DNA of 24,403 nucleotides from Cyanophora paradoxa CCMP329 (taxonomy: Eukaryota; Plantae; Glaucophyta). The notes under the pieces are model-generated. The model was not told the origin of the DNA. It did no database searches and was given only the letters and a program-made list of their open reading frames with translations. The DNA lies in NCBI GenBank assembly GCA_004431415.1, contig QPMI01000171.1:1-24403 (forward strand), given 5' to 3'. Each line of letters begins with the position of its first letter. Within the stretch, counting starts at the first letter, position 1. Below, piece by piece: positions 639 to 22,456 of the stretch. A program made the position numbers and the translations under genes.

Positions 639-2730
639 CCCTGGACGGGGTCAGGGGCGCGGGAGGGGCGGGGCGAGCGGGGGACCTCGCGGGGCACGGC
701 GCGCAGCGGGCCCAGCCCGCCCCGCTCCGGTGCCTGCGCGGGGCGTGGCGGCGCGGGGGCGGGGGAGGGCCGGCGGGGCGCACGCCGGGGCCGTGGGGGC
801 CTCGGCCCCGTTGAGGGCGATGAATCCTCGTAGGCCCGCGCCTGCACGCGCCGCGTCACTGGCGGCATGCCGCGGGGGGAGCAAGGAGAGGCGGGGGCCG
901 GCCTTGGCCTCGTGGGCGCGGGCGGCGGGGCCCCAGGGCTCCTCCGGGGCGCTGGCGTGCCAGGGGGCCCCCGCGCTGGCGTAGCGCTGCCAGAGGCGCT
1001 CGCGGGCGATCTCGAGCGCCTCCTCGTCGCTCATCCCCTCGGGGATCTCGATCGTGAAGCCGGCGCCCGTCGCCACCGCTCCCGCGCCGCGAACCCCGCC
1101 CCCAGCCCCGCCGCTGCCCACCAGCGCAGCGTCAGGGGCCAGAGAAGGATGCGTGCGGGGGGCGGGAGGGGCGGACGGCCGGCGGCGCGGAGGGCGCGCT
1201 GGGTGGCGGAGAGGGGCGGCGGGCGGGGCGGGGCGGCTGGCCGAGGCCGCCCCCGCGAGGCCGGCCTCCGCCAGCGCCGCCATCTGCGCCCCTCAGCCGC
1301 CGGGCGAGGCCCGAGGGGCGGGGTACCGGGGGTCCTCCTGCGGCACCACGAGTACCGCCCCGCGATCTGCCCCGCCCGCTCCAGACGGCCCGCGATGTGC
1401 GGGGGACGGGGGAGCGCACCGGCGTGGCGGACGTCGGGCGGGAAGGGCGCCGCGAACCGCTCCACGAACTCTGCCTCCCGCAGCCCGCTCCCTTCGAAGC
1501 ATGGAGAGGATGAGACGGGCCGGACAGGCGGGAAGAAGAACTGGCGCACTGGCCGTAACGGGCGCGGGGCCCGCCGCCGTACTCGGCGTGCGGTGCGGCG
1601 CCGCTGCTCGAGCCGCTGCCGCAGCACCTCCGCCGCTGCCGCCCCGCGTCGGCGCGCCGGCGGGAGGTTGCGAGGCCGGGCGGGGCGGGGCGGGCCGTGC
1701 TGGAGGGAGAGGCCGTCGGGGACGACGACCTCCCAGCCGTTGCTCGTCGCCACCACGTCCGATGCCCGCCTGCCCGCCCGTCACGAGGGGAGCCCGCGCG
1801 GGCGGCCTGCGCGGCGTCTCACCGCTTGGCGTCGCGGACGGCGGCGAGCGGGTCCTTCGGGGCCCGCAGCTCCCCCGCGAGGGCCTCCAGGTCCACCCCG
1901 GCGCCCCCCGCGGCCGCCCCCCGCCCGGCCCCGCCGAAGGTCGGGCCCTCGCCGCCCGCCCGAGGCCGCCCCCCGCCACCCCCAGCGTCGCGTACTCCGC
2001 CCACTGCCCCCGGCACTGCTCGCTCGGCCCCAGGCGGCGCGCTGGGGCGGGGCGCGGGGCGCACGGGGGAGGATGCCTCGGGCACGACGAGCAGCGCGTA
2101 CGGGTCTGCGGGGCCCGCCGCGTCGCACCCGCGGCCGACGCTCCCTGGGGCATCGGCGCGCACTGACGCCGGAGAGGTCGACGGGCGCCGCCGCCGCGCG
2201 TCCCGTTCCGACGCGCTCCACGAACTCCGCCATCGCCTGCGCCTTCATCCTGCGCCCGCGTCGGCACCGTCGTGCGGGGCGGGAGGCCCCGAGCGGCCGC
2301 GCGGACTCGTGGTAGCGGGCCCAAAGGCCGCCCCCGAACTCGAGCTCCTTGTGCGCGTCGCCTCCCGCTGCGCGAGCCGCCCCCGACACACCTCCGCCGC
2401 TGCGCAAGGCCCGCGTCAGCTCAGCCGAGCCGGCAGCGCGGCGGAGCGGCGAACCTTGCTCCGCGCTCATCTCCCGCCCGCCCTCGCTCAGCGCGAGGAC
2501 CTGCGGCCGCTCGGCAAGGCGCGCAAGGGCAGCGGCGCTCGCGGGAGGGACGTGTGAGCGCTCTCAGCGCGCCTGGAACCCGTTCGAAGCGCGGTGCAAG
2601 AGCGCGGAGCGCCTGCGAACGACGTTTGTTTCGGCGCGGCGGACCAGGCGCATCATACCGCTCGCACACACCGTTGCAGGTCTGCGATCAGCGCGCGGCC
2701 GGTCGGGGAGCCGCCGGATGCGTTCGACAT
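587..2730 (-). CDS. Multi-exon hypothetical protein, no family recognised
   Basis: ATG at 2730 (MSNASGGSPTGRALIADLQR), several canonical minus-strand introns, and coding-like segments HKELEFGGGLWARYHESAR, PYALLVVPE, VDLEALAGELRAPKDPLAAVRDAKR, VATSNGWEVVVPDGLSLQH, EAEFVERFAAPFPPDVRH, FTIEIPEGMSDEEALEIARERLWQRY. Last intron 641-685, last exon GYPLAPSFGAGPASAAP* (stop 587-589). Many indels. Confidence 0.6.
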
Positions 2731-2816
2731 TGCGCTGAGCTGGGTATGCGATTCGCGGCGCGAGAAGCGGCGGCGCGGCTATCGATGGCACGAATTTGAA
2801 CGCGCCCGGGGCTCGA
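2731..2816. promoter_or_regulatory. Very short divergent (bidirectional) promoter region
   Basis: 86 nt between the inferred ATGs at 2730 (-) and 2817 (+); contains CGAATTTGAA (2791-2800). Confidence 0.5.
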
Positions 2817-5800
2817 ATGCGCTGTCTGCAGCTGATAGCAGCGCTGGCGGTGCTCGCAGCCGCAATCAGCGCAACGGGGTGAACGCGCTGCAGTTCAACC
2901 TGACGCAGTCGGAGTGGATCGAGCTGACGTTTCCCGGCGTGCGTTCCCGACGTGTGCCCGCGCTGCCGAGGCTGCACATGCTGACGGCGAGCGCGCAGTG
3001 CCCGTGCCTCGTATCGTTCGAGCTGCAGGCTGATGCCGCGGACGTGCGGCTCGCGCGCGGTGGCGAGCGGCGCTGCGAATCTGTCCTGGAGCGGAGAAGG
3101 GCTGCTCCAGGCGCGCGCAGATGCGGCCGTCGACGGGGATGAGCTGAGGCTGGCCTTCGGGGCGGATGCTGCGGGCGCCGGCGTGTCGCTCTCCAGCGCG
3201 CGTCACGGGGCGAAGCGCGCCGCTGGCGGAGGTCGAGGCGGCGCACGCGCCCGCCAGCGCCGGCCGCTGGCTGGCCCCCGCCCCGCGCATCCGGTCCGAC
3301 GCGCCGTTCCTGGAGGCGCAGGCGCCGGCGCGGCGCCCCGGAGCCGAGCGCCGCGCGAGCCTCATGCGGCGGCTGTTCGGGGGCGGGGCGACGGCGCGGC
3401 CCTCGCCCTCGCCGGAGGGGGCGGAGGAGCAGGGGCGGGCGGGGCGTGGGAGGCGGGGAGCGGGCGGCGGGGCGGGCCGCCTCGCGGAGGCGGCGTCGCT
3501 CTACGAGGCGGCGGGCGACTTGGGGCGCCCACCCCGCCGCCCTCCCGGCGGGCCGGCCGAGCGTACTACGCCGCCGCCCTCCTCCGGCGCTTCGCGGGGG
3601 CGCGGCGGCGAGGGCGGCGGCGGCCGTGCTGCTCCGGCCGCGCGCTGCTGGCGGACCCGTCCCACGACGGGGCGGCCAGGCGCTCGCCGGGGCGCAGGGG
3701 GCGACCCTGGTCCGGGCGCCGGGGGCGGCGTGGTGGGGACGGAGGAGGCCCTCGAGGTGGCGGCGCGCCAGGCGGCGTGGCGGCCGCCGCGCCCGCGCCG
3801 ACCACTTCCTCGACCTCTGCCGCGCCGGCCGCCCAGGCCGCCCCGCCCTCCAGCGCCCGCACCTTCTCCTTCTAGCCTCACGCGGCGGGGCAGGCGCGGC
3901 GGCAGGAGGCGGTGGAGGCGGCGTGCGCGATCGCCGAGGAGCTCGAGCCGCGCCTCGAGGAGACCACACGCTGGTTCCGTGGCGCGGCCCCTTCCCCCGC
4001 TCGCCACGCCCCGGCGTACGCGGCTCACGGGGCGCGGCGGGGGCGCAGGCGGGGCGGCGACATCGACAGGGGACGCCGCGGCGGCCGCCCGCCACTTCTC
4101 CCGCCTCCGCGTGCGTCCCCCGCCCTCCTGCCCGCTGCTTCCCTCAAATCGAGGCGCCTGTGCAGGAGGTGGCGCGGGAGCCGAGCACGCGCGCCGTTGC
4201 CGCCTCGGGCCGCCTCCTCGCCCTCTCCCGCGCCCTCGTCTGGGACTCCTGGGACGAGGCGCGCGCCCCGCCGCCTCGCCCGCCGCTGCTGCTCGGGCTG
4301 ACGGACGGCAGGCGGTGGCGGAGGCGCTGAGGGCGTCGCGTGGCTCCTGGCGCAGCCCGAGGCCGCCGCCGCCTCCGCGCCCATCACCCCCTGGTGGTCC
4401 GCCCCGGCCCTCTCTCCAGCGCTTCCGCGCCGACGGGGTGGGCAGGGCGATGTCGCTGCCGCTGCCGGCGGCGGCCAAGCGCGCCGCCCTCGTCCGCTCC
4501 GCCCGCTTCCTCCTCCGCCAGGTCGCCGCCGCCGGCCACGCCGCGCCTTCCGGCCCCGTCCGCGCTCCTCCCGCCGGCCGCCCCTCCGGCCCGCCCGCCT
4601 CCGCATCGCCTACTACAGCTCCTATCTCGGGTGCGCCCGCCTCCTTCCGTCTGTCAGGGCCTCGGCGCTCATGGCGGCGCAGGAAACCTCGATGGGATGG
4701 TCCTGGCGGCAGGTCTTCGGGCTGCAGGACCGGAACCGCGTGGAGATCTACGTGTACAACCGCTGGGAGGGGCTCGGCCTTGGCGACAGCCCTGTGCTGC
4801 GCGAGGTCGCCGCCGCCGCGGCGAAGCAGTACGACGTGCGGGGCTGGAGCGCGCGGCGCATCGCCGAGCAGATCAACACCGACGGGGCGCACGTCCTCGT
4901 CCACCTCGACTTCTGGACCGCCGTCCGCCCCGCCCCCCCCCCCCCCCCCCCCCCCCGTCCACTCCCGCCGCACCTCACCCGTGCCCCTTCTCGCAGGGTG
5001 ACTCCCCGAAATTTCGGCGCTGCGGCCGGCCCCCGTGCAGCTCCACTCCACCATCGGCTCCACCGGCGCTCCCTTCTTCGACTACCTGTACCCCGCCCCG
5101 CCGCCCGCTGCGCGTACCCCAGCGAGAGGGGGGGCGGCAGGTTTGGGGACCGCGTGTCGACGGCCCCCGAGGCGGCCCTCGGGGAGCTCTCGGAGAAGGC
5201 CCTCGTCCTCCCTCCCCCGCTCTCCATCGCCATGAACAGGCCCGCCCCGCTCTCGGCATCCGTTCCCCTGCTTCTGACGAGGGTGCAGCCTACGGAGCAT
5301 ACTCTCCAGCGAGGCGCTGCAGCAGACCTCCCGTGAGGAGGAGGGGCTACCCCCCGGGGCCCGCGTGCTGGCCGTCCACCATCGGTCCGCCCCCGTACCC
5401 CTCCATCCCCGCGCGCCCCGCGAGCGTACCCACCCCCACCAGACCGTGAAGCTGTACCCCGAGCTCATGGACGTGCGCCCTGCCGGGCCTCTCTGCTCGC
5501 CCCGGCCCGCCTGAGCTGCGTGGCGGGGCAGGTGTGGGGGAACGCGCTGCGGCGGTCGCCGTCGTCGGTGCTGTGGATGCTGGAGGAGCTGCAGCTCGAC
5601 GTGGCCCCCGCGGCCGGCGCGCACTCGCCGCCCGTGGCCTCCCCGCCTCCCGCCTCCTCTTCGCCCCGCGCCGCCCGACGTCGTCGCCCAGGCCGCCCCG
5701 GCCCCCGCCGAGGCCCGCGCCCCCGCGCTGATCGGGGCCGCGGCAGGCGCGGCGCGCCGCCCTCGCCGACCTCTACCTCGACACGCCCTCGTGCGCACCC

Positions 5801-6344
5801 CCTCCTTTCGCCCCTTCCCGCCCCCAACACCGCCCCGCGCAGTACAACGGCGTGACCACCCTCCTCGACTACCTCTTCGGGTACCCACGCCCCGGCAGCG
5901 TCCCCATCTCCACACCGCCCCCTCACCGCCCCCGCAGCGGGGTGCCGGCGGTGACGCTGCGGGGCGACTCCATCTCCTCCCGCGTCGCCTCCGCGTGCGC
6001 CCGTGACGGCACCCGGCCGGCCCGCACCCAGCCGCGCCTCGAGCTCACCTCCGGGGCGCAGGATGTGCACTCGGCTCGGGGGCGCCAGCTGCGAGGTGGA
6101 CGGGCGCAGGAGGCAGCGCGGCTGGCCCGCCCGGGCGGGCCCCGTGGCGCGCAGCCTGAAGGCGTACGAGGACTGGCCGCCCTGGGGCCCGGGCCCTGCC
6201 GCGGGGCCGCGGGCCGGCGCGCGCTCTTCGAGACGGCGGCGTGGCGGCCGGCCTGGACGCCGCCCTCGCCATGGCCGCCGACCTCGCGCCGCCGGCGAGG
6301 CCCCCGCCCACCTCATCCTCGCCGCGGCGGCCCCCTCCGACTGA
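2817..6344 (+). CDS. TPR-like repeat + glycosyltransferase family 41 (O-GlcNAc transferase/SPINDLY-like) protein with predicted N-terminal signal peptide
   Basis: Reconstructed exons match OGT catalytic lobes: RLRIAYYSSYLG|ETSMGWSWRQVFGLQDRNRVEIYVY; ARRIAEQINTDGAHVLVHLDFWT; ALRPAPVQ..STGAPFFDYL; TSREEEGLPPGARVLAVHH..VKLYPELMD|VWGNALRRSPSSVLWML; LADLYLDT..YNGVTTLLDYLFG|GVPAVTLRGDSISSRVAS; ALFETAAW. N-terminus MRCLQLIAALAVLAAAISATG. TPR-like helices at ~3470-3790. Confidence 0.9.
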
Positions 6345-6448
6345 GATGCAGGCTAGATGGCTCTAGGTAGGGTAGTGACAGTTCTCGTATGCTTTTTCGT
6401 CAACGTTCAGTGCGATCGAATTCGCAAGCCGCTGAAGCCTCGGTCAAG

Positions 6449-6504
6449 CTTGAGGCTTGAGGCTTGAGGCTTGAGGCTTGAGGCTTGAGGCTTGAGGCTT
6501 GAGG
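6449..6504. repeat. Heptanucleotide microsatellite (CTTGAGG)x8, followed by degenerate GCTTGA units to ~6536
   Basis: Eight perfect units counted directly, in the intergenic region ~90 nt upstream of the VIT-vWA ATG. Confidence 0.95.
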
Positions 6505-6591
6505 CAGAGGCTTGATACGAGCTTGAGCTTGAGCTTCGTTCGCCTTCGTACGGACCTGAGGCGCTGAGTCGTACGGGCTGAGCCGAGCGCC

Positions 6592-9513
6592 ATGCTCTCC
6601 GCGCGGCCGCCCATCGGCCTCATTCCATCCGAACCGGCGAGAGTGATCCTCTGCATCGGCATCTAGTCCGCCCACAGCGAGCGTTAACCGCATGGCGTCC
6701 GAGAAGGCCCCGAGCCCGCTGCGGGCCGTGTACGTGACGGGAACCATCGACACCTTCTTCAGCGACATCTCGAGTGCGTGCTGGTTGCTGCCAGCGCTCC
6801 TCCATGCGATCAAGCACTGACGGCGGCCCGCGCCCCGCGCAGTCCGGCAGGTGTACAAGAACGAGAGCGCGGGCCCGATCGAGGCGGTCTTCCGCTTCCC
6901 GCTGCCCGAGGGCGCGGCGGTGATCGGCTGGGAGGCGCGCGTCGGCGACCGCCGCATCGCCGGCGTCGTCCGCGAGCGGGAGAAGGCCGTGCGCTGCCCG
7001 CCCGCCCCCCGTGCTCGCCCGCCCGCGCCGCCGCTCAGCGTCGCTGGCGCAGGCGGAGGAGTACTCGGCGGCGATCGCGGGCGGGCACGGGGCGTACCTC
7101 CTGGAGCGGGAGGCGCCGGACGTGTTCACCGCGAGCGCGGGAACCTGCTGGCGGGGCAGGAGGCGGAGCTCGCGCTCTCGTACGTGTGCGAGCTACCGAT
7201 GACGGCGGACGGGGCGGCGCGCTTCACGCTCCCCACCACGATCCCGCCAAGTACACGCCGGCGCGCACCGCCCCCGAGGAGGCCGCCGCCGTCAACCCCT
7301 CAGCGTCGCCCTCACGTGCGGCCCGCGCCTCCCCGCCCGCCCGCCGCCCGCCGACGCCCGCGGCCCGCCGGCGCGCGCAGGTGCCGTACGCGATGAGCCT
7401 GGAGCTGCACGTGGTGGCCCCGCGCCCATCGCCTCCATCGCCTCCCCGACCCACGCCCCCGACCTCGGTCCGCCCGCCCGCCCCGGACCCGCGCCGCGCG
7501 CCGGCCGACGCGGGGCAGAGGTGACGGTGGCGGGGCGGGAGGGCGGGTGCGGCTGGCGCGGGCGGTGCCGATGGACGGGGCGCTGGTGCTCGAGGTGGCG
7601 CACGCGGCGCCGCGCGCCCCGCACGCCTGGGCCGAGCGCGCCGAGGACGGCTCCGCCTGCCTCGCCCTCTGCCTCTGCCCCGAGTTCGAGGCGGGGGCGC
7701 CGCCGGCCCCCGGCGAGTTCCTCTTCCTCGTCGACCGCAGCGGCTCGATGGCCGGCTCGAAGATGGAGCAGACGAAGAACGCGCTGCAGATCATGCTGCG
7801 CGCGCTGCCCCCGGGCTCCGCCTTCGACCTCGTCGGCTTCGGCTCCTCCTTCCGGCGCCTCTTCGCCGCCCCGGCGCCCTACGGCGACGCCAGCCTCGCC
7901 GAGGCGGCCCGTGCCGTCGCCGCCCTCCAGGCCGACCTCGGCGGCACCGAGCTGCTCGCCCCGCTCCGCGCCCTCCTCGCCGCCCGGCCCCGCCGGCCGG
8001 CCCCGCCACCTCTTCCTCCTCACCGACGGCGAGGTCAGCAACACGGAGGAGTGCATCGCGGCGGTGCGGGCGGCCCCCGCCGGCACGCGCCTCTTCGCCC
8101 TCGGATCGGGGCCGGGCGTCGGAGCACCTGGTGAACGGGCTCGCGCGGGCGGGGCGTGGGCACGCGGCCTTCATCGCGGACGGGGAGCGGGTGGAGGGGG
8201 CGGCGCTGGGGCAGCTGCGGCGCGCGCTGCTGCCAGCGCTCGCTGAAGCGGCTCTCGACTGGGCCTCCCCGGCGCCGCGCAGGCCCCGCCGCCCTCCCCG
8301 CCGCCGCCCGCGGCGAGCGCCTCCTCGCCTACGCCCTCCTCCCGCCGGCACGGGGCCCTCCCCGCCTCCGTCACCCTCACCGCCCGCGGCCCCGCCGGCC
8401 CCGTCGCCTTCTCCGTGGCCGTGCCCCCCGGGGCCGGCGGGCGGGTGACGGCGCTGGCGGCGCGGGCGGCGGTGCGGGAGCTCGAGGAGGCCCCCGACGG
8501 GGCGGCGGCGCGGCGGCGCATCCTCGAGCTCGGCCTGCGCCACTCGCTCGCCACGCGCGAGACGGCCTTCGTCGCCGTCGAGCGCCGCGACGGTGCCGCC
8601 CCGCCCACGAGCCGGCCCGCCTCGCCCTCGTCCCTCCATGCCCCTCCGCGTCCGCCCGCCCCGCCCCGCCCGCCCGAGCGCCGCACGAGCGCCGCCGACG
8701 CTCCGCCTCGCGCAGGAGCGGGAGCGGGAGCGGCCGGCGCCGATGCCGCAGGCGTGCATGCGCATGGCGCGCTGCCGGAGGGCCGTCTCGCCGCCGGCGG
8801 CGATGCTGGCGGTGGACGCGGTGATGCTGCAGGAGCAGTGCGAGGAGCTCGAAGTGGAGGCCGCCGAGTTCAAGCGCTCCGCCGCCCGTTTGAAGCGCTC
8901 GGACGCCCACTGCCGCACCCTTGTCCGCGCCACCTCGTCTGCCCGCCCAAGGCGCCCCGGCCTCGCCGGCTCAGCCGCCGCCGCCTCGCCTCCGCCGTCG
9001 CCGTGCGCCCCGCCCCGCGCGCCCTCTCCGGCGCGCCTGACCCGCGGCGCCGGCGCAGTCCGTCGGCGGCCTCTTCCGCAAGAAGGAGAGGGGCGCCGCG
9101 GGGCCCCCGAGCTCGAGCCCGGCCGCGAGCCCGGCGGCGGCGCGCGCCGAGCTCAACCGCGGGACGCCCGCGGCGCGGAGGAGGCGGCGCCGGGCGGCCG
9201 CGGGGGAGGGCGGCCGGCGGCACGACGCGGTGCTCGCCCTGCAGGCCGCCTCGGGCTTGTGGGCCCTCACCCGGCCCTCGCCGCCGCCCTCGGCGCCCGC
9301 TCGCCGCCCTCGCCGCCGCCGCCCCGCGGCGGTCCCCGAGGCGGTGTGGGGCACGCTGCTGGCGCTCGCCTTCTCGAGGCGGCCTGCGGGGCGCACCGCG
9401 AGGAGTGGGGGCTCTGCGCCGACAAGGCCCGCCGCGCCCTCGACGCCCTCGGCGCCGCCCCCGCCCCGCACCGCCTGGGGCCCCGCCGCGCCGCCGCCGT
9501 CTCCGCCGCCTGA
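6592..9513 (+). CDS. VIT + von Willebrand A domain protein (VWA5A/BCSC-1-like)
   Basis: VIT: PLRAVYVTGTIDTFFSDI..VYKNESAGPIEAVFRFPLPEGAAVIGWEARVGDRRIAGVVREREKA..AYLLEREAPDVFTASAGNL. vWA MIDAS: FLFLVDRSGSM, ADLGGTEL, LFLLTDGEV. C-terminal ILELGLRHSLATRETAFVAVE, LALQAASGLW, WGTLLALAF, EEWGLCADKARRAL. Alternative start ATG at 6692. Confidence 0.92.
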
Positions 9514-10358
9514 TCATTATGGCATGAGCCCGCTTATCGAATCTAGAAGGCCGCTGGTCGCGCTGCGGCAAGCTTAAGCCCCGCCTCTCAAGTTCGTACA
9601 TGTACAGCCAGCAATCTAATCAGAGCTTGAACTTTGGAAATCAAGCTTACTGGTTTTTAGTTGTAAAATTAGAACCATGGCCAGCCTGGCAGCCTGGCAT
9701 GCGCAGCTGCAGTGCCACGGTGAGGCAGTTTTATTTTCAGCTAGGCTTCCGAGTTCAAGCGGCCCGGCCCGGCGGCCCGCGGTTTCGAATTTTCATTTTA
9801 GGCCTGAGGGCACAAGATGACCGTGGCGTTGGTACTGCGGCACTGAGGCATTTTTTTATTCAGTACGGTACGTGTGAGTCGATAATGTATCGGACAGTCG
9901 TGGCGTGCGTGATCATGACCGTGGGCGTGCGTGATCATGACCGTGCCGCAGTGCACGCGATGTACATGTACATGTCACGTGCCGGTTGCGATGTCATCAG
10001 ACTCTGAGAGCGCAATATTAATTCGCGATCGAGTCTATTGCAAGCTTTAAAGGCGAGCGCTAGCGCAAGGCGAGCGCATGTTGACCGTTGAGGCGAGCGC
10101 AGGTCCAGCTTTAGCATGAGGCCAAGGCTCCGTCCAGCATAAGGTCCCCATTGCAATGCAACGGCCTAGGCCTGAGCGCTAGCGAAAGCGTATTGTTGCA
10201 TCGCAGGCCCGGGGAGCAGCTCCGCATACGCGCGCACCGATCGATCGAGTGGACGTATACGTACGCGTGGCCATATGCATGCGCCGGCCCGGCCCAGGAC
10301 GTCGACGTAGAGCCACGGCCTCTAGATCTAGATCTGCGAGCTCGGCTCCTCGAGCTCG

Positions 10359-10824
10359 GCCTCTGCGCATGCGGCCGCGCGGCGCCGATCACGTGCACGC
10401 GTCGGGCTGATATAGCTTCGGGCTGTGCAGCAGCGCCTCGGGCTTCGGGCTGTGCAGCAGCGGGAAGGGCTTCGTACCAGCTGCAGTGCTCGGCGCTTCG
10501 CCTGCTCTCACTGCTGTGCTTTAGCTGCTCTGCTGCGTCACTCGCTTGCAGACGCCCATCGCCCGGTGGAATTCGAAGGACGCGGAGCGGTTCTCTGAAG
10601 TAGACTCGCCGGGAATCGAAGTAAAGGGGGGGAGGAAGCTGGAGGGGAGGAGCCACCAGGGACGGGTACCGCACCAAGTTAGTGCACCGCCAGTCGGTAA
10701 AGAACTGCGGACTGCGCAGTCAACAGGTCTGCCTCTCCCGCAGCGCCCTCCCGCAGCCAGCTAGCTGTTACATTAGTAGCACTGCGAGGCCGTTACTGAC
10801 TGCGCCGCGCGTTGCCGTTGGCAG
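10359..10824 (+). promoter_or_regulatory. Upstream cassette copy 1 (putative promoter + non-coding exon + 5'-UTR intron 10727-10824) of the rhodopsin gene; paralogous to 19742-20160 (-)
   Basis: Colinear blocks shared with the reverse complement of 19742-20160, e.g. 10522-10571 vs 19988-19939 (41/50 ungapped) and 10603-10620 vs 19926-19909 (17/18). Intron has GT donor, ACTGAC branch and GCAG acceptor ending 8 nt before the ATG. Confidence 0.75.
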
Positions 10825-10832
10825 AATAAACG

Positions 10833-12439
10833 ATGGTCCTCCTGCAAGTGTCGGCCCCCCAGATGGCCGGCAACATTGCCGACTCTGGCCTCAGCCATGT
10901 CTTTGACCTGCAGACCAACCCCCGCACCAACACTATCGTTGATGGCACCGCGACCACCCGCGTCGCCGGCGTGACCGTGCCCGCGGCCAGCCGCTGGTCC
11001 AGAAGGTTGCCGACGCGGCGGCAATCGCGTGATCCGCTTCTGCCGCTCAACAACAACGGTGCCCTCACCTTCGACCAGGCCCAGACCTCAACCAGATGTA
11101 TGGCAGCCAGACGGTGCTCTTCGACACCAACACTGGCGAGCCGGCCCCCCTGCCCGGCCAGGAGATGTCCCCACCTTCGCCCGGTGGTACCAGACTTACG
11201 CGCTGAACAACAAGAACCGTCAGTCGGCGTTCGTCCCGAACGGCCAGTGCTCCTTCACCTACGATCAGTTCGCGTCCTTCTACGCGGGCTCGTACCTGAA
11301 GGACCCGGAGTCGGTGCAGCTCGCTATCCAGCGGACGTGCTACAACCGCATTACCGGCCTCGGCCCCGACTTCTACTCGCCGGAGGACGCCGCCGAGCGC
11401 GGCAGGTCTTCTTCTGGATTGAGTTCGGCATCCAGGCGGCGATGTTCACCCTCTTCCTGATCCTCACCCTCCGCCGTGAGGAGCACAAGCGCCGCTTCCA
11501 CTACATCACCACCCTGTACTCTGGCATTTCCACGATGGCGTACTACTGCATGGCCCGCGGCCAGGGCTCTGTTGCCCTGTTCGACACCTGGTCGGTGCGT
11601 AGCAGATGTGGGCTCCAGTTTGCGCAAACTCGTGCTCAGATGCGTCGCAGAACGGCGACTTCAGCCCGTACCGCGTGTTCTACTATGCGCGCTACATTGA
11701 CTGGTCAGTGGCACAGTTCGTGTTAGTGTGGCCTTCATTTGTCTTACATCTTGGCTCAGGTTCCTGACCGTGCCGCTCATCATCCTGAACCTGTGCCTGT
11801 TGGCTAGCGCAACCAAGGCTCTGACCATTGGTCTGGCTCTCTCTGCATGCTCATGGTCGGCACTGGCCTCATGGGCGCCCTCTCCATGTGAGCACAGCGG
11901 CTGTTTTATCGCTCTATTGGGATCGTTAAATTCTGAACGTGTCTTGTTCAGCACCGGCACCAAGTGGGCTGGTTCGGCATCTCCAACATGTGCTTCATCC
12001 CCATCATCGTCGCGTGGGTGACCGTTCTCCGCAAGAACGCCCGCGAGAAGTCCCCGGAGGTCGAGAAGGTGCGGCATGTTCCTCTGACTGTAGGGTCTAC
12101 GCTCACGAGCGAGCAGACCTACAACATCCTCATCATCATCTCCATCATCGCCTGGTTCGCGTACCCGCTTATCTGGATCATCGCCACCGGCACGCACGCC
12201 ATCTCCTTGCGGCCGAGATCGTCTCGTACGCCGTTGTCGACACCTTCTCGAAGGGTGAGCTCATCAAAGAGCCGGCCATATATTCCTTTTCTGATCTTTG
12301 TTCCAGCGCTCTTCGGTGTGATCCTGCTCTTCTCGCGCTCGGCGATTGAGGATGCTTCGTTCAAGGACCCGAGAAGATGAAGCTCCCGACCTCGTACACT
12401 AGCTCCACCATCTACTCTGGTGTGCTCTCCAAGGCGTAG
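10833..12439 (+). CDS. Type-1 (microbial) rhodopsin, bacteriorhodopsin-like 7TM, with ~190-aa N-terminal extension
   Basis: Introns 11595-11650, 11704-11759, 11888-11951, 12069-12116, 12255-12306. Helix B RRFHYITTLYSGISTMAYYCMARGQG; helix C YARYIDW|FLTVPLIILNL; helix D (D)MLMVGTGLMGAL; helix F AWFAYPLIW; helix G EIVSYAVVDTFSK|ALFG with the retinal-binding Lys. Stop is 12378-12380 as written, or 12437-12439 if one more 1-nt deletion is corrected (..EKMKLPTSYTSSTIYSGVLSKA*). Confidence 0.95.
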
Positions 12440-12698
12440 TGGGCCTTTTTCTCGCGTGCCGGCGCTGTTCCGTGTCTGTCACTAGATTAGGCGCCGATGC
12501 GTTGAATAAACCGAACAACGCCGCTCCGCTTAGTCACGTTGCAGTCGTGGCGCAGTGTACCGTAATGTGTTTATGCAAATTATGGTGTTTTTCACGGTGG
12601 GTAAGAAGACACAAAAGGACTGAATGGCAGAGCAAAAAGGGAAGTGCCGCATTAACGTTTTCTCATGGTGGATCAGCACTAGAGTGCACTAGAGCTGC

Positions 12699-13031
12699 GG
12701 CTCGAGCTGAAACCCCCGGCTTGAGCTGGCTCGAGCCGGCCGTTCCAGGTTCGAGCTGGCTCGAGCCCTCCTAAGGGGGGGTGTACCCGGTCCCGGACTT
12801 CGGCGCTCGAAGAAACTCTGGCCTCTAGCGATAGCTCGTGCGGATATATGCGGAATGCACATAATCTTACAGAATAGAGGCAGGCTAGCCTGTATTTGAT
12901 ATCGATGACTCAGGCCCGCGACACGAGCTAGAAATTAAATGAGCTAGCACTGTTTCCGTCAGAGGCCGCCTCTCCCCCCCCTGGCTCGAGCCCCGGCTTG
13001 CATGGCCGGCTCGACCTTGTTCGCCCCCCCT
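12699..13031. repeat. GGCTCGAGC-rich repeat cluster with an imperfect 19-nt inverted repeat (possible MITE remnant)
   Basis: GGCTCGA(G)C at ~12699, 12728, 12758, 12983, 13008; 12774-12792 AGGGGGGGTGTACCCGGTC vs revcomp of 13013-13031 AGGGGGGGCGAACAAGGTC (15/19). Confidence 0.4.
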
Positions 13032-13165
13032 ATAGCTAGGTTGCTGGGCGGGGAGGAATGCATTCCACAATTTCGTCTTGCATGCCTGCCCTTCGCCTGC
13101 TTCAACAAACCAAATATTTTTTTGGCTGCTTGTTGAAGCTTTGGGGTCCGATGCACATGACCAAT

Positions 13166-14797
13166 TCAATGGTTGCCTTCGAAGATGTAGGCTTTCTGCA
13201 GAAAGCGATGAAGCACTTGCGCAAGTTCAGCAGGCTTCTCGCTGTGCACCCAGTGGCCTGCAGGAGGAAACTCAGAACTTCTGTGTCAGTGGTCTTGACT
13301 CTAAGACTTCAAGACTTGCCTGCTCCTTCGATGGTTTTTATTTCAGCTCTTGGAAAGAGGGCCTTGATTGTGTCCTCATGTTCAGGCAGAATGTAGTCAG
13401 ATGCTGATCCTCGGATGAATAAAGTTGGACCATCATAGGTACGTCCTGAGGAGAGAACAAATACAAATTAGTGGAAGGACAAATATCTAAAGAGTCTAAC
13501 TTCTGCACACCCTGACCAGCTGTGTTTGCTTGAATCCACCTAGATGGAAAAGATGCCAGTGATGGCCAGCATCGCTCAATTGACTGCACATGCATAGGAT
13601 CATGGTGGATGTGAAACTGTGCTGAGAACCAACAATAGATCTGACCTCGAGATTAACCCTCCATTTATATCCAGTGGCAGAGTGAACGAGATTCGTGAGA
13701 AGAAAGCCTCGCACTCTTGGGTCCTGGAATGAAATAGGTTTCAGAATGGGAAAAGTATTGTCAGCTCATCATGCACACCTTCACATGCGGGGCTAATGTT
13801 GCATCTGCATCTGCTCGAGATTTGAGAGTTGAGAGGTCGACACTGTGGACAGGTCAGGCTCATGATTGTTTGCGCAACAGAAAATCAGCACTTTTACATA
13901 CTTTCTCAGAGGCCGAATTACGCCATCAAGCATAGCATTGTGATCATATGTGACTGGTGCTATGTCCACAACGATCAAGGCGGACACCAGGGACGGATTT
14001 TCCAGTGCAAGCTGCATGAAAAACTTGGGATAAGGACAAATCGACCTCAATCAAGCAGTATGCTGCACGCACCTGTGCAACAGCCTTTCCCCCCATGGAG
14101 TGCCCTGCGAGCACCCAGGGGTGAGCATATGGTACAACCTAAAAAACCTCTTGATAACCAAATACAATTGCAATGATCATTATTACCCAGCCATATTGCC
14201 GATGAGAGGTTGTGGCATCCCATCCAAGCACGCAAATCATGTGCCATTAGCTCTGCAAAGAGCAGGCCGTTGGCTGTAAGTTGTGCGAGCACAAACAAAC
14301 GTTCTCGAACCGTACGACATGTCAGGGTGATGTTCGGAAGTGCCGTGATTGCGAGCTGCGAGGCAGCGTCATGAGAACTGAAGTTCGAGGCGTCAATGTG
14401 GTCTCACCGTCCAACATGTATGCCGTCTCGAACGGGCGCTGCTGCAAAGGCTCGTTCGCGTATTCCGCGTCCATCTTCGAAATGAACCCTCGCCAGTTGG
14501 GCAGCGCGCCGAACTGAGCAGGGCTTCAGACGGGCAAGCAGAACTGGCGCGCGTTTAGATCACCCACCAGTCCGTGCTGCGCCTGGGTCAACTAGACACG
14601 TGCGCAATGCGCTTGTCGTTTCGTACCAAGATGCAGATCGGCGGGCGCCGGTGCGGTGTGTCGTGCGAGCCGTGCCGAATGCTCGAGAGGGCGACCGCGG
14701 GCGGGTCTACTGGCGGCCGCGTGAGCACTCCTCGACGCTGGAGCGCGTACCGCGCATCGCGCTGGGCGGTGCGAAGCCAGGGGACAACCACGCGCAT
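13166..14797 (-). CDS. ABHD11: Alpha/beta hydrolase, ABHD11/YbfF esterase family; Arg-rich N-terminus suggests a mitochondrial presequence
   Basis: Spliced motifs PPICIL|HGL|FGALPNWR, YMLD|ARNHGTSEH, G|HSMGGK (nucleophile elbow), LIVVDIAPVTY, RGFLLTNL..YKWRVNLE, AGHWVHSEKP; stop 13166-13168. Confidence 0.88.
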
Positions 14798-14848
14798 TTT
14801 GGCGAATTCGAGCTGTACCCTGCGTCAGAGGTTGAGCGCGGTTAGGTT
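14798..14848. promoter_or_regulatory. Extremely short divergent promoter region between ABHD11-like and USP genes
   Basis: 51 nt between the inferred ATGs 14797 (-) and 14849 (+); contains CGAATTCGA at 14803-14811. Confidence 0.45.
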
Positions 14849-17800
14849 ATGGTGGGCCGCGAGGGCTCGTCGGGCGGTTCAGGCGAGCGAGCGAGCTGTA
14901 GCTAAGCGCATCCGTCCGCCGCACACCTGACGCGCGATCGCAGCTTCCATTGACGTGCTCCTCGCGAGCACGAAGGATCTGCTCCCGCGGCGCATCCCGT
15001 TCGTCCGATCGACGAGACCGGAGGACGACGCGATGGAGCTAAAGATGCGGTTCGGGCAGCGCAGTCGTCGTCGCGCCCGTCGAAGCCGGCCAGCTCTCCG
15101 GGCGAGGTGCGCGATCGGCGCGCGTGCGCGCTGTATCGTACTGGTTCTGTACGCAGACTGAAAGGCTCCTCGCAGGACCCCGACAACAGCTGCAGCCGCC
15201 GCCGTGCTATCTCTTCCACCAGACCGGATCGGCAAGCTGCTGCACTGGCAGCGGCAGACGAAGATCGGATGCGGTCTTGAAAACATGGAAACAGCTGCTT
15301 TGCAAACGCAGTGCTTCAGAGCCTTACGTACACGCCGCCGCTCGCCAACTACCTTCTCTCTGGCGAGCACTCGAAGTCCTGTGCGTCGCTGCTTCGCGCT
15401 GCATTTCTCTTGAAGGCTGTAGATTGAGCTTTTACGCAGGCCGGAAAGCGCCGGAACAGTTCTGCGCAATGTGCTTGCTCGAAAAGCACGTTGGCCGGGC
15501 GCTCTCGCAGAACGGCGGGGCATTTCACCCTACGCGATTGTGAGGCGTATGCGAGGTCAAGCCTTTCTTTTTTCAATCCTCAAAACCGTCTTTCTCATTT
15601 TCGTGATGCGTTCCAGAGATCGCTTCGCATTTCCGGATAGGCAGACAGGAAGACGCGCACGAATTCGCCCGTTACCTCATCGAATCGATGCAAAAGATTG
15701 TTTGCGGGGTCTGGGGTGCGGTTGAAATTTTTTTCTGCCGTATTTCTCTAATCCGCACCCCAGAAAAGTGGAGCCCGCGTTTCAGAGACCACAGTGATCC
15801 AGCAGATCTTTGGGGGATACCTCAGAAGCCAGGTATGCTTCCTGCTCCAATAAGGCCGCCGTCGTGCGCCGAGCCGCCATTGCAGGTCAAGTGCTCGCAG
15901 TGCCAGTACGGGAGCAACAAGTTCGACCCGTTCCTGGACCTGAGTCTGGAGCTCCGCGGCGCGAACTCCGTGGAACAGGCGCTCAGCAACTTTACCGCTG
16001 CCGAAGTTCTGGACGGCGAGAACAAGTACCGATGCTCCAAGTAGTCCCGTCCCTGTCAGCCTCCGCACCCCGGCGCTGATGGGCCTCAGGTGCAAGAAGC
16101 TCGTCCGGGCGACGAAGCGGCTCACGATTCACCACTCGCCCAACGTCCTGACGATCCAGCTGAAGCGCTTCGACTTCGGGCGGCACTCGGAAAGATCAAC
16201 AGCCCGTGGCGTTCGGCCCGACACTCGACCTCGGCCCCTTCGTGTCGTGCCGCGAGGTCCGCAGCATAGCATGGCTAGCGGGGCGTCGGGCGCTGACGCG
16301 GCGGGCGGCAGCGGGAGGGCCACCAGTACGCGCTGTACGCGGCGGTCGTGCACGCCGGCCACTCGATGCACTCCGGGCACTACTACGCGTACGTCAAGAG
16401 CCCCTCGGACTTCTGGCACTGCATGGACGACTCCTCGGTGCGCCCCTCGGGGCCGGGGCGGGTGGGGCGGGCGGGGCGCGGCGGTCCTAGAGCCGGCGCG
16501 CAGGTGCGGCCCGCCTCGGAGGCGGCCGTGCTGCGAGAGCCGGCATACGTGCTCTTCTATCGCCGCCGCGCGCCGGCGCCCCTGCCAGAGATGCGCGAGG
16601 CCGGCCTCCTCGAGCGCCTGGGCGACTATGCCCTCGCCTCCTGAGGCGCGTCCGCCGCCCTAGCGCCCCGCCTCCTCGCGCTTCGCCTCGAGTGCGGCGG
16701 CCTGACTCGACGCGGCGCAGGTACGGCACGTCGGCGAGTCTGCCGTTCTGAAGGAGCGCCCGTACATCCTCTTCTACGTCCGCACCCGCCCCACGCCCCC
16801 GCTCGGCCAGAGCGGCGCAAAGGCGGCCAGCCCGCACCCAGCGAAGGGCGGCGCAAGCCCACGGCACGCGGCGGAGGCACAGCCGCCCCCAGCAGCAACC
16901 GTGGGCCCTGCGGGCAAAGTGACGCGGAAGAGGATGGCGGAGGAGCCGGCCCCCGCCCAAGAACGAGTGCGCCTGTCTTGGCCGGTACTTGAAACGCATT
17001 ACTGACCGCCACTGTAGGCGAGGGCCGGCGCAGGAGACACAGAAGCGGGACGGGAGGCTACAAAGCGAAGGAAGCCGGCCCTGGAGGTAGACACGGGCAC
17101 AGCAGCGGAGTACGGGCGCCATCTCACGGGAGCCATGAGCCCGAGCCCGACGCCGGCGAGTCCCGGCTGGATGCGCTCCGCAGCGGCCTGCGTGTCCTGC
17201 GCTCGCGCGCGGATGCACGCCGTGCGGCGCGCGAGCACCCCGGGCCAACACCGCGCTCGGAGGAAGCCGAGTCGCCACCAGTGGAACCGAAGGAGCCTGC
17301 GGGCAGGCGGCTGCAGCGAGCAAGGGTCCCAGTCCCGCTGAGGACGAAGAAGAATATGCTGCTCGTCAGCAGAGTCTAAACCAAGCTCCAGTCGTTCAGC
17401 AGCTGCCCCAAGGGAGCGCTTCATCCCCCCAGTGGAGCGCGCGAGCGCATTCGACTTTAGTGGTCCCCTGGGCAAATCCGGTGCGGGATCTGCTAGGTGC
17501 TGGCAATCTTTTCGCTGCACTGACATCGGCAACGCAGTGGGACAGTGGGACGGCGATGGCAGTCCGGGCGTGTTGTCCGAGCGGGAGCGGCAGCGAGTGC
17601 TCACGTTCAGCAGCGGCATGCAAGGCCCCCGGCAGCAGCGCGACGAGTGGGACGAGGCGTACGATACAGGCCGCACCAGAAGGTCAGCGGAAGCACGAAG
17701 GCGAGGAGGCGAGCAGCAGGAACAGCAACCCCTTCCAGAGTCTCCACGACGTGAAACGGGTGGAGGCCGCGGCGAGGCGCGGGGAGGCCGCGGGGGAGGC

Positions 17801-18016
17801 CGCGGAGGTACGGAGGAGACCGTGGAGGCCGTGGCGGAGGCCGTGGCGGGAGTCGAGAACGCGGCGGAGGGCGCGGCGGAGAGCGCGGGGGCAGGGGCCG
17901 TGGCGGAGGCCGCAGCGGAGGTCGCGGCGGAGGTCGAGGCCGAGGGGATTTTCCCGCGGGGCGGTAGTCGTGGCAGATCGTTCGCACGAGGACGTAGCCA
18001 GCTAGTAGTTTATTGA
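14849..18016 (+). CDS. Ubiquitin-specific protease (peptidase C19), USP36/USP42/UBP23-like; long isoform with basic/RGG C-terminal tail
   Basis: Cys box GCGLENM(G)[12 protein letters not shown]; RQEDAHEF; [17 protein letters not shown]; ENKYRCSK|CKK; LTIQLKRF; His box [23 protein letters not shown]. Tail has [19 protein letters not shown] and GGRG repeats (~17760-17990). 3' end approximate because of indels. Confidence 0.92.
16504..16644 (+). other. Alternative terminal exon A of the USP gene (paralogous to exon B starting at 16721)
   Basis: After donor 16438 (DDSS|GTGCGC) two phase-0 acceptors occur: 16503 gives [29 protein letters not shown]; 16720 gives [26 protein letters not shown]... 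Confidence 0.75.
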
Positions 18017-18465
18017 TGCTCACTGCACTAGAGCTAGATGTGAAGCTTCGTGAAGCTAGATCTGTCACATATACAGATCTGTCTGATGTCGACGTCCGTG
18101 TCATAGAGACCTGATTCTGAACTCAATGATGCACATGAAGTCCTGATTTTAATTCGCATGCTCTGTATTTGAATGCGAAGAGTCGACGTCGCCGCATGAA
18201 ACGCCCTCCCTGCCAGCTGTGGCAAATTACACGCTTATCACCATGTGTCCCTGAAACTTAATTGCATCCTCTCGATTCACCTTCACATCCCGCACGCACA
18301 CTTCCCGGCCCAAACTCTAACTAAAAGCCGGAGTGCAAAACGTATTCTCCAGCCCGGCCCTAGAAATGCACCCTCTCCTTTCCCTTTGTCTTCCGCAGCA
18401 ACATATGCCTGAGTGAAATAACCAGAAAAACTAATTGCGATTTATCTCGTTACACCGCCGACATC

Positions 18466-19588
18466 TTACAGCTGGCGCTGCACGAAGATCGCGAGGATGT
18501 GAAGAACGCAACAGCAAGGTCGCGGGGGTAAGCGAGAAGCTCGCGCTGTTGGCCGCCGAGGAGCAGCGAACGCGGGCGTAGACGTCCTGAGACGCAACCT
18601 CGTGGTCTTCGGTAGGTGTTGCCGTTCACAGAGACAGTGGTGTCCAGGGTGACGGTGCCGATCTTGTAGCAGCCCATCGGCATGCTGCGAGACAGTTTAG
18701 ATAAGGCATGCACAAACTGACCCTCGTCTGCAAAACACGCACGTGGCCTTCTGCAGGGCACGGCCGAGGGATGGTGGTGCACTTGTCATCAGCGAAGTGC
18801 GAGAACCATCTGGAGGTTGCGGTCGCAGGACAGCTGCACGTGCAAGATTAGCCAAACAGCGAAAGTAGAAGAACAGAGAGCAAGTGCACCTATCAGTAGT
18901 TGTAGCTGGCGGTGGCCTTGTCGACGTTGGCGGTCTCAGGCTGGAACCGGAAGTTGTCGTTCACGAGGAGAAGAAGTGGAACGCCGAGCAGGTGGCGACG
19001 GCGTCGCGGCCACGGCAGTCGCGCCGGGGCATGCAGTCGCCTGCGAGCGGTGGTCTGGCCAAGAACGGCCGCGACGGTGAGGAAGTTGGTGGCGGTAGAG
19101 CGGAGGTGAACTGCGAAATGCGTTACAGAAGTAACTACTTGTCTCCTGAAAGATGCGCACAGTCGGGGCCACGCCGCCGGTCGGAGCGGTGCGGGGGTGA
19201 ACGGGAAGTTGGTCAGCCAGTGGCGCCAGCGCCCGCCGAATAGCAGGTAGAAGTCGAGAAGGTGTAGGTCCAGGGCTGCAGAAACTTAGCGGTGTATCAG
19301 GACATCGTGGAAGGTGGAATCACCAGGGGGGCGAAGTTGGCGGTGTTCCGGTTGGACGCCTTAATGACCTCGTCAGAAGTACCGATGGGGCGGTACGCCT
19401 GGCCAACCATATCGCCATCAGCGTACGGCTGCAGGCAGGTCGAGTCCGAGTACAGGCTGCCGGTCTGGTGAGTGTGAAACCCACCGCTGACCTCCGCCCG
19501 CAACGGACCCGACAATGCGAAGGTTCTGGGCGGTGGCGATGGCCGCCAGCCCGAGGAGGGCAACGGCGAGGACGGCGAGGGACCGCAT
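18466..19588 (-). CDS. Secreted/cell-surface protein of unknown family with signal peptide, scattered Cys and a hydrophobic C-terminal tail (GPI-anchor-like)
   Basis: MRSLAVLAVALLGLAAIATA|QNLRIV; segments TGSLYSDSTCLQPYADGD, PWTYTFSTSTCYSAG, NDNFRFQPETANVDKATASYNY, MPMGCYKIGTVTLDTTVSVNGNTY, DVYARVRCSSAANSASFSLT followed by a hydrophobic stretch ending (L)AIFVQRQL* (TAA 18466-18468). Three coding introns and two 5'-UTR introns (19605-19705, 19742-19821). Several indels. Confidence 0.8.
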
Positions 19589-19741
19589 CCTAACGGACTC
19601 TTCCCTGCGCACCCATTGAACAAACCAGGGTCAGCTCCAGATCCAGCCATACGATCCTCGCGCTCCAGGGCTCGCTAGGACCGCGGCAGAGCCACAGCGC
19701 CGCACCTGTATTTATTGGGCGAAATGCGCGGTTTGCGCGAT

Positions 19742-20160
19742 CTGCGCAGGTAGAGAACAATAGCACAGTCAGCTGCTGGCTGCTGGGCTGCGCGGGGCTC
19801 TGGGCGCGCTGGAAGGCTGACCTCGTTTATAACAGAGTCCGACTGCACTACTTGGCGCCGTACCCTTCGGTGGCGGCACCCTCCCTCGAACTTCCTCCCC
19901 CCAACAGATTCGAATCCCGGCGAGTCACTTCCGAGACCTTCCAGCAGGCCATCGGCGCATACAAGCGAGCGGCGCAGCAGAGCAGCTATAGTCAAAGCAG
20001 GCAGCGCGACCACAGGTGCGAGCCCGCGCTGCTTGCTGGACACCCCGCCCGCCTGCCCCAGCTCGACAGCGCTGCGCAGCAGCTGAGCGGAGTGGAAGCG
20101 CGCGAAGCTGGAAACCGGAACAGAGGAGGCGCTGATCGCGCTGATCGGCGCCGCAGAGGC
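19742..20160 (-). promoter_or_regulatory. Upstream cassette copy 2 (putative promoter + non-coding exon + 5'-UTR intron 19821-19742) of the surface-protein gene; paralogous to 10359-10824
   Basis: Same ordered blocks as copy 1, in the same orientation relative to its downstream gene; donor GTCAGCCT vs GTCTGCCT, shared GCAGCCAGC(T)AGCTG and CTGACTG(C/T)GC inside the intron. Confidence 0.75.
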
Positions 20161-20815: not shown

Positions 20816-22456
20816 TCAGTGCTCCGGAGAGAGAGGGAGGCCTTCGGGGAGCGGGCCCAGTCGGGAGGTCCAGAGGACGGGTCCCGGGGTCTCCACCTCC
20901 ACGCTTGTGCCAGTCAGCTGCGCAGCCGACAGTTCTCAGGCTCAATCGAGGCTTGAGCGCTCACCTCTTTACACACAGGCGAAGGTCCATCGCGCACCTC
21001 GTTAGACACGCTCAGGAGCTGCCCGAACTGGAGGGGTCGCGAGGGGTCCAGCTCCCACTTGAGGCCACGCGTCCGCACCGACAGCGACCCAGCCCCAGGG
21101 TGAAGCAGGCCCACCTGCCCGCTCTCGAACCGCGGGTCCAGCTGCAGCTGCGAGGACGGCAACAATATTATTGGCAAGCAGAGTCTCAAATTCGTCGAGG
21201 AGCAGCAATTCCGGCGGCGCACGAGATGGAATCCGGCTGGGAGGCACGTCACGAGCGAGTCCCGCCCCAGCAACCTGCACCGGAATGTCAGGGGCACGCG
21301 AATCGAGAGAGGTGGGTCATGCGAACGTCAGGGGACGCGGGTGAGCGGATGCCTGCCCGAGATGTTAGAGTCACTGACGATAAAGGGGGTCTCTGAAGGC
21401 AAGGATGCGAACGAGGGCCATTGCGTCATTCTGCCAAAATTAAAGAGCGTCAGTGATCATCGGAGAGAGCCGCTGGCATTAATGAGCGAAGGAGCGAACG
21501 CACGATAGTCGCAGCTCCTGGTCAAGCGGCCACCAAGGGCGCCAGTGATGCAGACGAGCACACAGTCCTGTAGGCGACGCTCATCCCGTGAATGTCAACT
21601 CCATTCAAACCAGGCAACGAACCTGCCACAAGCACGCTGCGCAATCCACTCGTCTACAGCCGCGAGCGCCTTGTGAGCCGCCGAACGATCGTCGTGCGTA
21701 TCTGGAAGCCCCGTCAGACTACCAAATGCTCAAATGCCAGCGGAGGCCGAACCCGAAATGAACGAGACCCGCGCCCGAGCGGCGTTGACTGTTTCCCGCG
21801 CGCCTGCTCGGTGTAGAAGCTCCTCACGTCGGCGCGCATGCTCGAGAGATCGCCTTGACGACGTCCGGCACGTAGCTGCGGCGGTTCAAAGAATTGATTG
21901 CATCAACGCAACAGCCAAGAAACGCGGACGCACATTTCGAGCTCACCAGCGCACTCGGCGCTCAGAGTGTCGAACAGGTCGTTCATCGCGCACGCATCGG
22001 CAACGACGAACGAAGCGCTCCGCCACAGGTGTCGGAGAACGGGACTGCGCGAAGCAGGCCTGACACAGGGCCGCCCGTGGTGACCTGCGACCCGTGGCGC
22101 ACCTCTGGGGGCCTGGCAGAACGATGAGCGCGAGCAGCGCCTCACGCCCATCCGGCGCCACCAGAATCTTCTTCCCGACCCGTGGCGAGATCTGCACGAC
22201 TCGAATGGCACGCGGGCGGCAGCGCAGGCGGCGGCGGCGCAGAAGGTGACAAGCCAGCGCTGCGGGCGCACGAAATCGAAGACATTCCCCACGTTCATGA
22301 CGTGCTTCTCGAGCGTCTGCAGGGCGCGCGTCTCTGCAAGTGCGTTTGAGCGGGCGGTGCAAACAAGACTAGCGCCCGCCGGCCCGCACCAGTGGCGAGG
22401 GCGGCGTCCGAGGTCTTGAGCTCGCTTCCTGGATCGCGCGGATCGAGGAGGGACAT
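20816..22456 (-). CDS. Thiamine pyrophosphokinase (TPK1)-like protein with degenerate catalytic motifs
   Basis: LALIVLPGP; VLRHLWRSASFVVADACAMNDLFD; YVPDVVKGDLSSMRADVRSFY; ITGALGGR(F)DQ; VRTRGLKWELDPSRPLQFGQLLSVSNE|LTGTSVEVETPGPVLWT, colinear with eukaryotic TPK1. Start 22456 (an in-frame ATG at 22627 is also possible); stop 20816-20818. Confidence 0.85.

Follow-up and report, generated by a model that had tools for sequence, protein, structure and literature searches.

Segmental duplication of cis-regulatory DNA can place homologous promoters on unrelated genes, an event referred to as promoter duplication or capture, for which there is no single curated family. Promoters are also supplied by transposable elements, such as solo long terminal repeats (LTRs) and short interspersed elements (SINEs). 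The stretch of DNA analysed here (the window, 24,403 nucleotides (nt) of Cyanophora paradoxa CCMP329, contig QPMI01000171.1) contains a rhodopsin gene (g3759) and an orphan secreted-protein gene (g3763, gene B) with related sequences upstream, which are called copies A and B, respectively. The locus resembles promoter duplication or capture in that two homologous upstream regions each abut a transcript start (a predicted one at gene B) and face a gene, the coding parts are unrelated and the copy number is low. The difference is that just ~180 bp are securely duplicated at this locus, and that promoter activity and shared regulation are properties that we infer. Like promoters derived from transposable elements, the shared sequence is short and portable and has the transcript start at its downstream edge; unlike them, it was found as two copies alone at a likeness of at least 80%, with neither tRNA-like nor LTR hallmarks. 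The event is of a known kind, promoter duplication onto unrelated genes, of which the locus provides a new and well-supported glaucophyte example.

A rhodopsin-like protein of C. paradoxa is known as cyanophopsin (Frassanito et al. 2010 and 2013, cited in PMC4510345). Over its aligned exon pieces, the rhodopsin that follows copy A shares 92-97% identity with a UniParc entry of 334 amino acids (aa) (P0002), and it falls in the same 90% cluster as a 446-aa model (P0005). From its length, P0002 is presumably the published cyanophopsin. Nothing on the cyanophopsin promoter was found in the searchable literature. The published PacBio assembly, which has 'tig' contigs (the window contig being tig00000734), comprises ~100 Mb at 67.6% G+C; its genes contain on average 9.2 introns with a mean length of 86 bp, and intergenic distances average 770 bp.

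The shared core and its copy number

The initial annotation had described diverged, colinear inverted copies at 10359-10824 (+) and 20160-19742 (-), and each part of these was assessed separately. Homology was secure over ~180 bp, 10510-10686 (+) against 20000-19844 (-), which is referred to as the core. In the core 127 of 152 aligned pairs are identical (~84%), there are 29 gap columns and a 17-nt stretch is found in copy A only. A repeat search placed the arms of the core first and second among 538 inverted pairs in the window (10603-10679/19850-19926, 77%; 10519-10571/19939-19991, 81%). The local alignment score was 106, compared with 23.5 ± 3.0 for dinucleotide shuffles (z ~28), and for the core separately (10510-10690 against 20000-19840) z was 40, with none of 500 shuffles scoring as high. 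In a sensitive BLASTN search of 9600-10900 against the whole window the sole significant match was 10422-10767 against 20088-19770 (E = 8e-26), and no further copy was seen below E = 0.09. The 18-mer (with W at its ambiguous position), the 27-mer, GGGGGGAGGAAG and the GGGTAC...AGTGCA block, all of which had been named as two-copy motifs, each occur at both copies and nowhere else in the window. The colinear inverted copies were therefore found where they had been placed, but are robust only in the core: the small promoter duplication is genuine, and narrower than first described.

The two copies lie 9.2 kb apart in inverted orientation, and each has the same orientation and position relative to its own gene. 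The coding parts are unrelated: one gene encodes a rhodopsin (PF01036) and the other an orphan signal-peptide protein without a Pfam match, and no similarity between the two proteins was seen, in agreement with the earlier description. The claim of a regulatory module common to two unrelated genes and oriented alike towards each was thus supported.

In the explanation that we prefer (probability ~0.65), an inverted duplication has left a proximal promoter 5' of each of two unrelated genes, both of which have a very short non-coding first exon and an intron in the 5'-untranslated region (5'UTR). Some 180 bp of cis-regulatory DNA would have been copied, inverted, to a site 9.2 kb away; the original unit may have extended from ~150 bp further upstream into the first intron. 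The rhodopsin gene and gene B would thereby have gained homologous proximal promoters. In both genes the shared segment would face the gene and stop at the transcript start or within a few bases upstream of it, in the case of gene B as judged from its homologue. Transcription would then give a non-coding first exon of ~20-55 nt, a 5'UTR intron of 80-98 nt and then the start codon, which in gene B would be preceded by an additional small exon and intron. The core would accordingly be expected to have promoter activity and to drive initiation at both genes, and a common regulation through the shared sequence may follow.

Sequencing reads were examined over 9700-15600 (5901 letters) in one DNA run, X1, and in three runs that behave as RNA, X17, X19 and X21. 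The X1 depth of 22.3 over 10488-10684 equals the sum of locus A (15) and a copy-B piece (17.8 x 81/197), and copy B lies in X1 on one 11.8-kb contig together with 12867-15600. No third contig matched the core at a likeness of at least 80% in this one run, from which the record filter may drop some contigs. Since copy B (~84%) was detected, an equally diverged third copy would be expected to show up as well. The core is thus not a high-copy repeat within the reach of this test, which covers copies of at least 80% likeness and not more diverged ones. Exact-pattern scans of public metagenome contigs also gave no copies.

With loci A and B alone at this level, the suggestion of a dispersed promoter-carrying repeat was not upheld. 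A related explanation is a low-copy mobile-element fragment with a promoter, for example a solo LTR or a decayed SINE of tRNA origin, that was inserted independently before both genes. LTRs do initiate transcription at their own internal boundary, repeats make up 29.4% of the genome (11.5% of them of unknown type), and the antisense strand of the copies has a B-box-like TTCGA(A/T)TCCC. The low copy number in X1 and the absence of any other copy from the window speak against such a fragment, as do searches for its hallmarks: ARAGORN found no tRNA in the copies, there was no Rfam match at the gathering score or even at E = 1, and on reading the sequence no T-arm could be drawn around the B-box-like motif. 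Independent insertion of a mobile fragment is accordingly regarded as distinctly improbable. It is also rather doubtful that the core acts as a portable promoter unit, strong or light-responsive, of which several unrelated Cyanophora genes have received a copy. In that event promoter copying would have created one small regulon comprising the rhodopsin and an abundant surface protein.

Transcripts of the rhodopsin gene and of gene B

The intron that had been predicted 5' of the rhodopsin start codon is present exactly as drawn: an RNA joint from 10723 to 10822 (cut +3, GT..AG, 98 nt) was observed in X17 (depth 6328, side 52) and X21 (side 19). The 5' ends of the rhodopsin RNA contigs are at 10672 (X17) and at 10705 (X21, directly after Illumina adapter, as is typical where many fragments end at one position). 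Upstream, over 10094-10671, the depth is zero in X19, zero in X17 except for a contig of depth 4.3 that has copy-B letters, and faint for copy A in X21 (9-22, ~18). By comparison, the depth of the rhodopsin exon contigs in X17, X19 and X21 is 1e3-5e4, while that of adjacent genes is 3-285; the rhodopsin contigs are 10 to 1000 times deeper than their neighbours in the three runs, and expression of the gene is very high. As the rhodopsin mRNA starts at ~10672-10705, core A lies nearly wholly upstream of it and is promoter-proximal DNA, not leader. The shared part, described earlier as a promoter/5'UTR/intron cassette, is thus mostly not 5'UTR; the mRNA of the gene B homologue (see below) also starts immediately after the core.

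The rhodopsin exons were matched best by EukProt models of C. paradoxa (EP00741), and one of these, tig00000734_g3759.t1 (P0001, 315 aa), reproduces the reading frames of the window exactly, including frame errors. The true rhodopsin product matches P0005 (tig00000663_g3005.t1, PF01036), which scores 130 bits against PF01036 (cut-off 24.6); the corresponding values for the exon pieces of the window are 18.8 and 28.2 bits. Relative to all DNA and RNA contigs, a single C or G is missing from the window at each of 11085, 11168, 11402, 11844, 11965, 12204, 12367 and further positions. These gaps, 20 in a 3.2-kb part of the DNA contig, are assembly deletions and break the rhodopsin frame repeatedly, so that model g3759 is corrupted. 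In X1 the rhodopsin is one locus at normal depth, and the two assembly contigs may therefore be one locus assembled twice. The gene also has a 15-nt micro-exon, CACCGGCACCAAGTG (part of ...ITGTKW...), between two short introns within 11888-11965, seen as letters inside the RNA joint from 11887 to 11966 in X17 and X21. Comparison with the 5'UTR of a distant rhodopsin transcript from a glaucophyte (L001/L002) showed no similarity, and a search of the protein collection for rhodopsin 5' fragments gave none.

Gene B corresponds to tig00000734_g3763.t1 (P0006). Its product of ~300 aa has a signal peptide at the N-terminus and a hydrophobic helix at the C-terminus, and matches no Pfam domain. When the N-terminus of gene B was used for an exhaustive HMMER search of 1.8 billion representatives, one real relative was found, P0007, a 303-aa protein that is 73% identical over the N-terminal 77 residues, and tblastn showed gene B to be colinear with it from 19588 down to ~18470. 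P0007 may be either a paralogue within C. paradoxa or the orthologue of a sister species. On this sequence evidence gene B belongs to a Cyanophora-restricted orphan family. Its secreted product is probably membrane-anchored, so that the label of cell-surface protein was a reasonable one. In the structure model of P0007 (predicted local distance difference test score 33.9) the signal peptide and the C-terminal helix alone are confident. A weak lead to PF11912 for this family, from an Atlas feature search, was unsupported by Pfam and was dropped.

Transcripts of P0007 were available as Logan contigs from four runs (L003, L004, L005 and L006), with Illumina adapter at both ends of L003, L004 and L006 and none on L005. 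Their 5'UTR consists of three exons, the junctions of which match GT/AG sites of the window at 19822/19821, 19742/19741, 19706/19705 and 19605/19604. The first 5'UTR piece ends in ...TAAACGAG, where the window has ...TTATAAACGAG/GT at 19822/19821, and exon-by-exon BLASTN showed the transcript jumping from 19705 to 19607. The donors and acceptors of gene B also fit the pattern of ten confirmed introns in the window. Both introns predicted for gene B, 19742-19821 and 19605-19705, are thus exact junctions in the spliced transcripts of a 73%-identical homologue. In three of the four contigs the adapter-marked 5' end is 21, 20 or 13 nt before the first junction, which corresponds to ~19842 in the window, directly after the AGTGCA that ends core B. 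By analogy gene B itself would start at the same position.

A thiamin pyrophosphokinase gene, recognised by its C-terminal vitamin-B1-binding domain at 20914-21297 (-) (PF04265, E = 3e-7), is co-directional with gene B and ends ~1 kb upstream of the gene B start. The Augustus model g3763 (P0006) takes an ATG inside core B (19884-19953 (-)) and reads the promoter and 5'UTR exons as coding. Because the signal peptide begins at the ATG at 19588, this read-through of the core is regarded as an artefact. The model probably also skips a frame error after ...NLRIVG by means of a spurious intron.

Some RNA was seen within core B. The contigs from X17 (depth 4.3) and X21 (196.9) carry copy-B letters at 10552, 10557, 10560, 10564 and 10566 and therefore cover 19988-19938; their alignment ends at 19938 (AAG/GTCTCG), unlike that of the DNA contig. 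This RNA could come from a minor upstream start spliced at that point, from the end of the thiamin pyrophosphokinase 3'UTR or from a divergent transcript. It could also be taken, together with the extension of model g3763 through the core, as a sign that the shared segment encodes a 5' leader, or else a structured or non-coding RNA in its own right, with a post-transcriptional effect on, for instance, translation or stability. Such a role is very improbable. The core is missing from rhodopsin RNA that is otherwise abundant, and on folding the two copies did no better than shuffles (z = +1.8 and +0.7); covariation from two sequences carries too little signal to judge structure. With no Rfam match and no tRNA, the structured-leader and B-box alternatives of the initial annotation are left without support. 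Core A also has no sense-strand ATG, and antisense substitutions in the 50-nt block are not codon-like (five third, four second and one first positions).

Coding origins were considered and rejected. Long antisense open reading frames run over both copies, but as a coding remnant they fail on a 19-nt indel that breaks the frames; a conserved upstream open reading frame, or a shared targeting-peptide exon, would lack a sense-strand ATG in core A.

The sparse RNA evidence suggests that the two genes are expressed at very different levels and gives no sign of co-regulation. Copy-B-type RNA is absent from X19 (depth 0), where rhodopsin is highest, and falls short of rhodopsin by orders of magnitude in X17 and X21, although contig depths from three runs are a poor measure of expression and this RNA may not be gene B mRNA. 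As it stands, the locus is a well-documented small duplication and does not amount to evidence that light sensing and the cell surface are functionally linked.

Edges of the duplication and pattern of differences

Outside the core the similarity is marginal. For the upstream flank 141 of 500 shuffles reached the score of the local alignment (not significant), and 26 of 1000 that of an anchored alignment (p ~0.03, marginal). A 9-mer and an 11-mer at 10359/10381 and 20160/20152 are colinear; shared 11-mers are frequent in GC-rich DNA of the window, occurring in 87 of 1000 shuffles and 12 of 234 control pieces. The weak block that contains them (Table 1) is possibly a decayed left edge of the duplication. 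One X1 DNA contig matches the window up to 10357, two bases before the left edge first proposed for the cassette, and then continues with at least 255 unlike, AT-rich letters (TAATTAATAATT...). The break may mark an insertion, a structural variant or another locus that has 9897-10357 in common with this one.

On the downstream side, anchored alignment of exon 1 with intron 1 was equalled by 54 of 1000 shuffles (p ~0.05) and that of intron 1 alone by 100 of 1000 (p ~0.10). Of the homologous 5'UTR intron that had been proposed, the presence of an intron at the predicted sites in both genes was borne out, and homology of its sequence beyond the splice signals did not reach significance. The first exon and intron may or may not have belonged to the duplicated unit: the two genes have the same architecture but a marginal likeness of sequence, and 5'UTR introns may simply be common in an intron-rich genome. 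The occurrence of AATAAA(C/T) in both regions raised the possibility that the 3' part of the copy A intron is the homologue of gene B exon 2, which was rejected as the alignment was not significant.

The block-wise conservation of the copies had been read as selection on regulatory motifs. In the core, differences are spread as in random permutations (longest run of matches 16, mean 17.3 in permutations, P = 0.60), and the blocks alone are consequently no evidence of selection. This is one of several points that weigh against a duplicated working promoter: the random spread gives no sequence sign of constraint, and a recent neutral duplication would look alike. Fine details of the alignment may also be distorted by the many 1-nt assembly deletions in the window. 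Contig ends are approximate transcription start sites, and the X17 rhodopsin contig has 25 unexplained letters (CGCGGGCCTCGTCCGAGCCGCAGCC) before 10672, which occur nowhere in the window; no AG precedes 10672, and the letters could represent a chimeric contig, an additional upstream exon or something else. The start of gene B is predicted from the transcripts of its homologue, and the RNA over 19988-19938, inside core B, does not fit a start at ~19842 unless it stems from a minor start further upstream or from a long 3'UTR of the thiamin pyrophosphokinase gene.

The same spread of differences is what would be expected if a small segmental duplication or gene-conversion patch had simply been left upstream of both genes, in which case the similarity would be a matter of recent origin, not of function, and at least one copy would be idle. 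The drop of similarity to background on either side and the 34.7 Mb of duplicate features listed for the published assembly agree with this. Both copies, however, end at a transcript start and face the gene, and a duplicate of 180 bp would seldom land so by chance twice. A neutral remnant is therefore considered unlikely, and the duplicated proximal promoter is preferred.

Should the core prove to be the promoter that drives the rhodopsin gene, it would be a compact and defined candidate for one of the strongest promoters of an alga that has been little studied. Its natural copy on a second gene would then be a ready-made experiment on which bases matter, and the locus would be a clean glaucophyte example of the duplication of regulatory rather than coding DNA. 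The coordinates are collected in Table 1.

Table 1 Features of the two copies and of the genes downstream of them
Feature	Position	Strand	Evidence or remark
Core copy A, putative proximal-promoter segment 5' of rhodopsin	10510..10686	+	Homology; near-zero copy-A RNA over 10094-10671
27-nt block in core A	10522-10548	+	
18-nt block in core A	10603-10620	+	
G-run/GGAAG block in core A	10627-10638	+	
GGGTAC...AGTGCA block in core A	10664-10686	+	
Rhodopsin exon 1, all 5'UTR, 22-55 nt	10672..10726	+	RNA contig ends
Rhodopsin 5'UTR intron, 98 nt, GT..AG	10727..10824	+	RNA joints in two runs, spliced 10726/10825
Remaining rhodopsin gene	10825..12595	+	ATG 10833, coding end near 12439; several 48-56-nt introns, 15-nt micro-exon
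Core copy B, inverted segment 5' of gene B (g3763)	19844..20000	-	Homology; DNA run X1 contig
Gene B exon 1 (5'UTR), predicted	19822..19842	-	5' end placed by adapter-bounded transcripts of the homologue
Gene B 5'UTR intron 1, 80 nt (GTCAGC...GCGCAG)	19742..19821	-	Splice pattern; exons of the homologue joined exactly here
Gene B 5'UTR exon 2, 36 nt	19706..19741	-	87% identical; L003 41-79 against 19743-19705
Gene B 5'UTR intron 2, 101 nt (GTGCGG...GCGCAG)	19605..19705	-	Jump in homologue transcript and splice sites
Gene B exon 3 onward	18466..19604	-	ATG 19588; third homologue piece = 19604 onward
Weak upstream block (GCCTCTGCG ... GGCGCCGATCA)	10359..10391	+	Partner 20142-20160 (-); marginal significance
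27-nt tandem duplication, 2.2 copies, copy A only	10415..10474	+	Poorly conserved stretch between weak block and core

Other features of the window

Between the 3' end of the rhodopsin gene and the next gene, 12655-13048 has a DNA depth of 42-45, compared with 15-18 elsewhere, and is represented by several short contigs with loose ends; it is probably a dispersed repeat. An expressed gene at 12874-14805 (-), with at least six introns of 55-65 nt (CT..AC joints), lies between the rhodopsin gene and a ubiquitin-hydrolase gene; ~140 nt separate its 5' end from the position (14941) at which RNA coverage of the latter begins. At the other end of the window, ~9 kb (1-9500) has a G+C content of 70-81%, compared with ~60% in the rest. 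The last coding part of this region ends near 9525 and its RNA extends to ~9900-10004.

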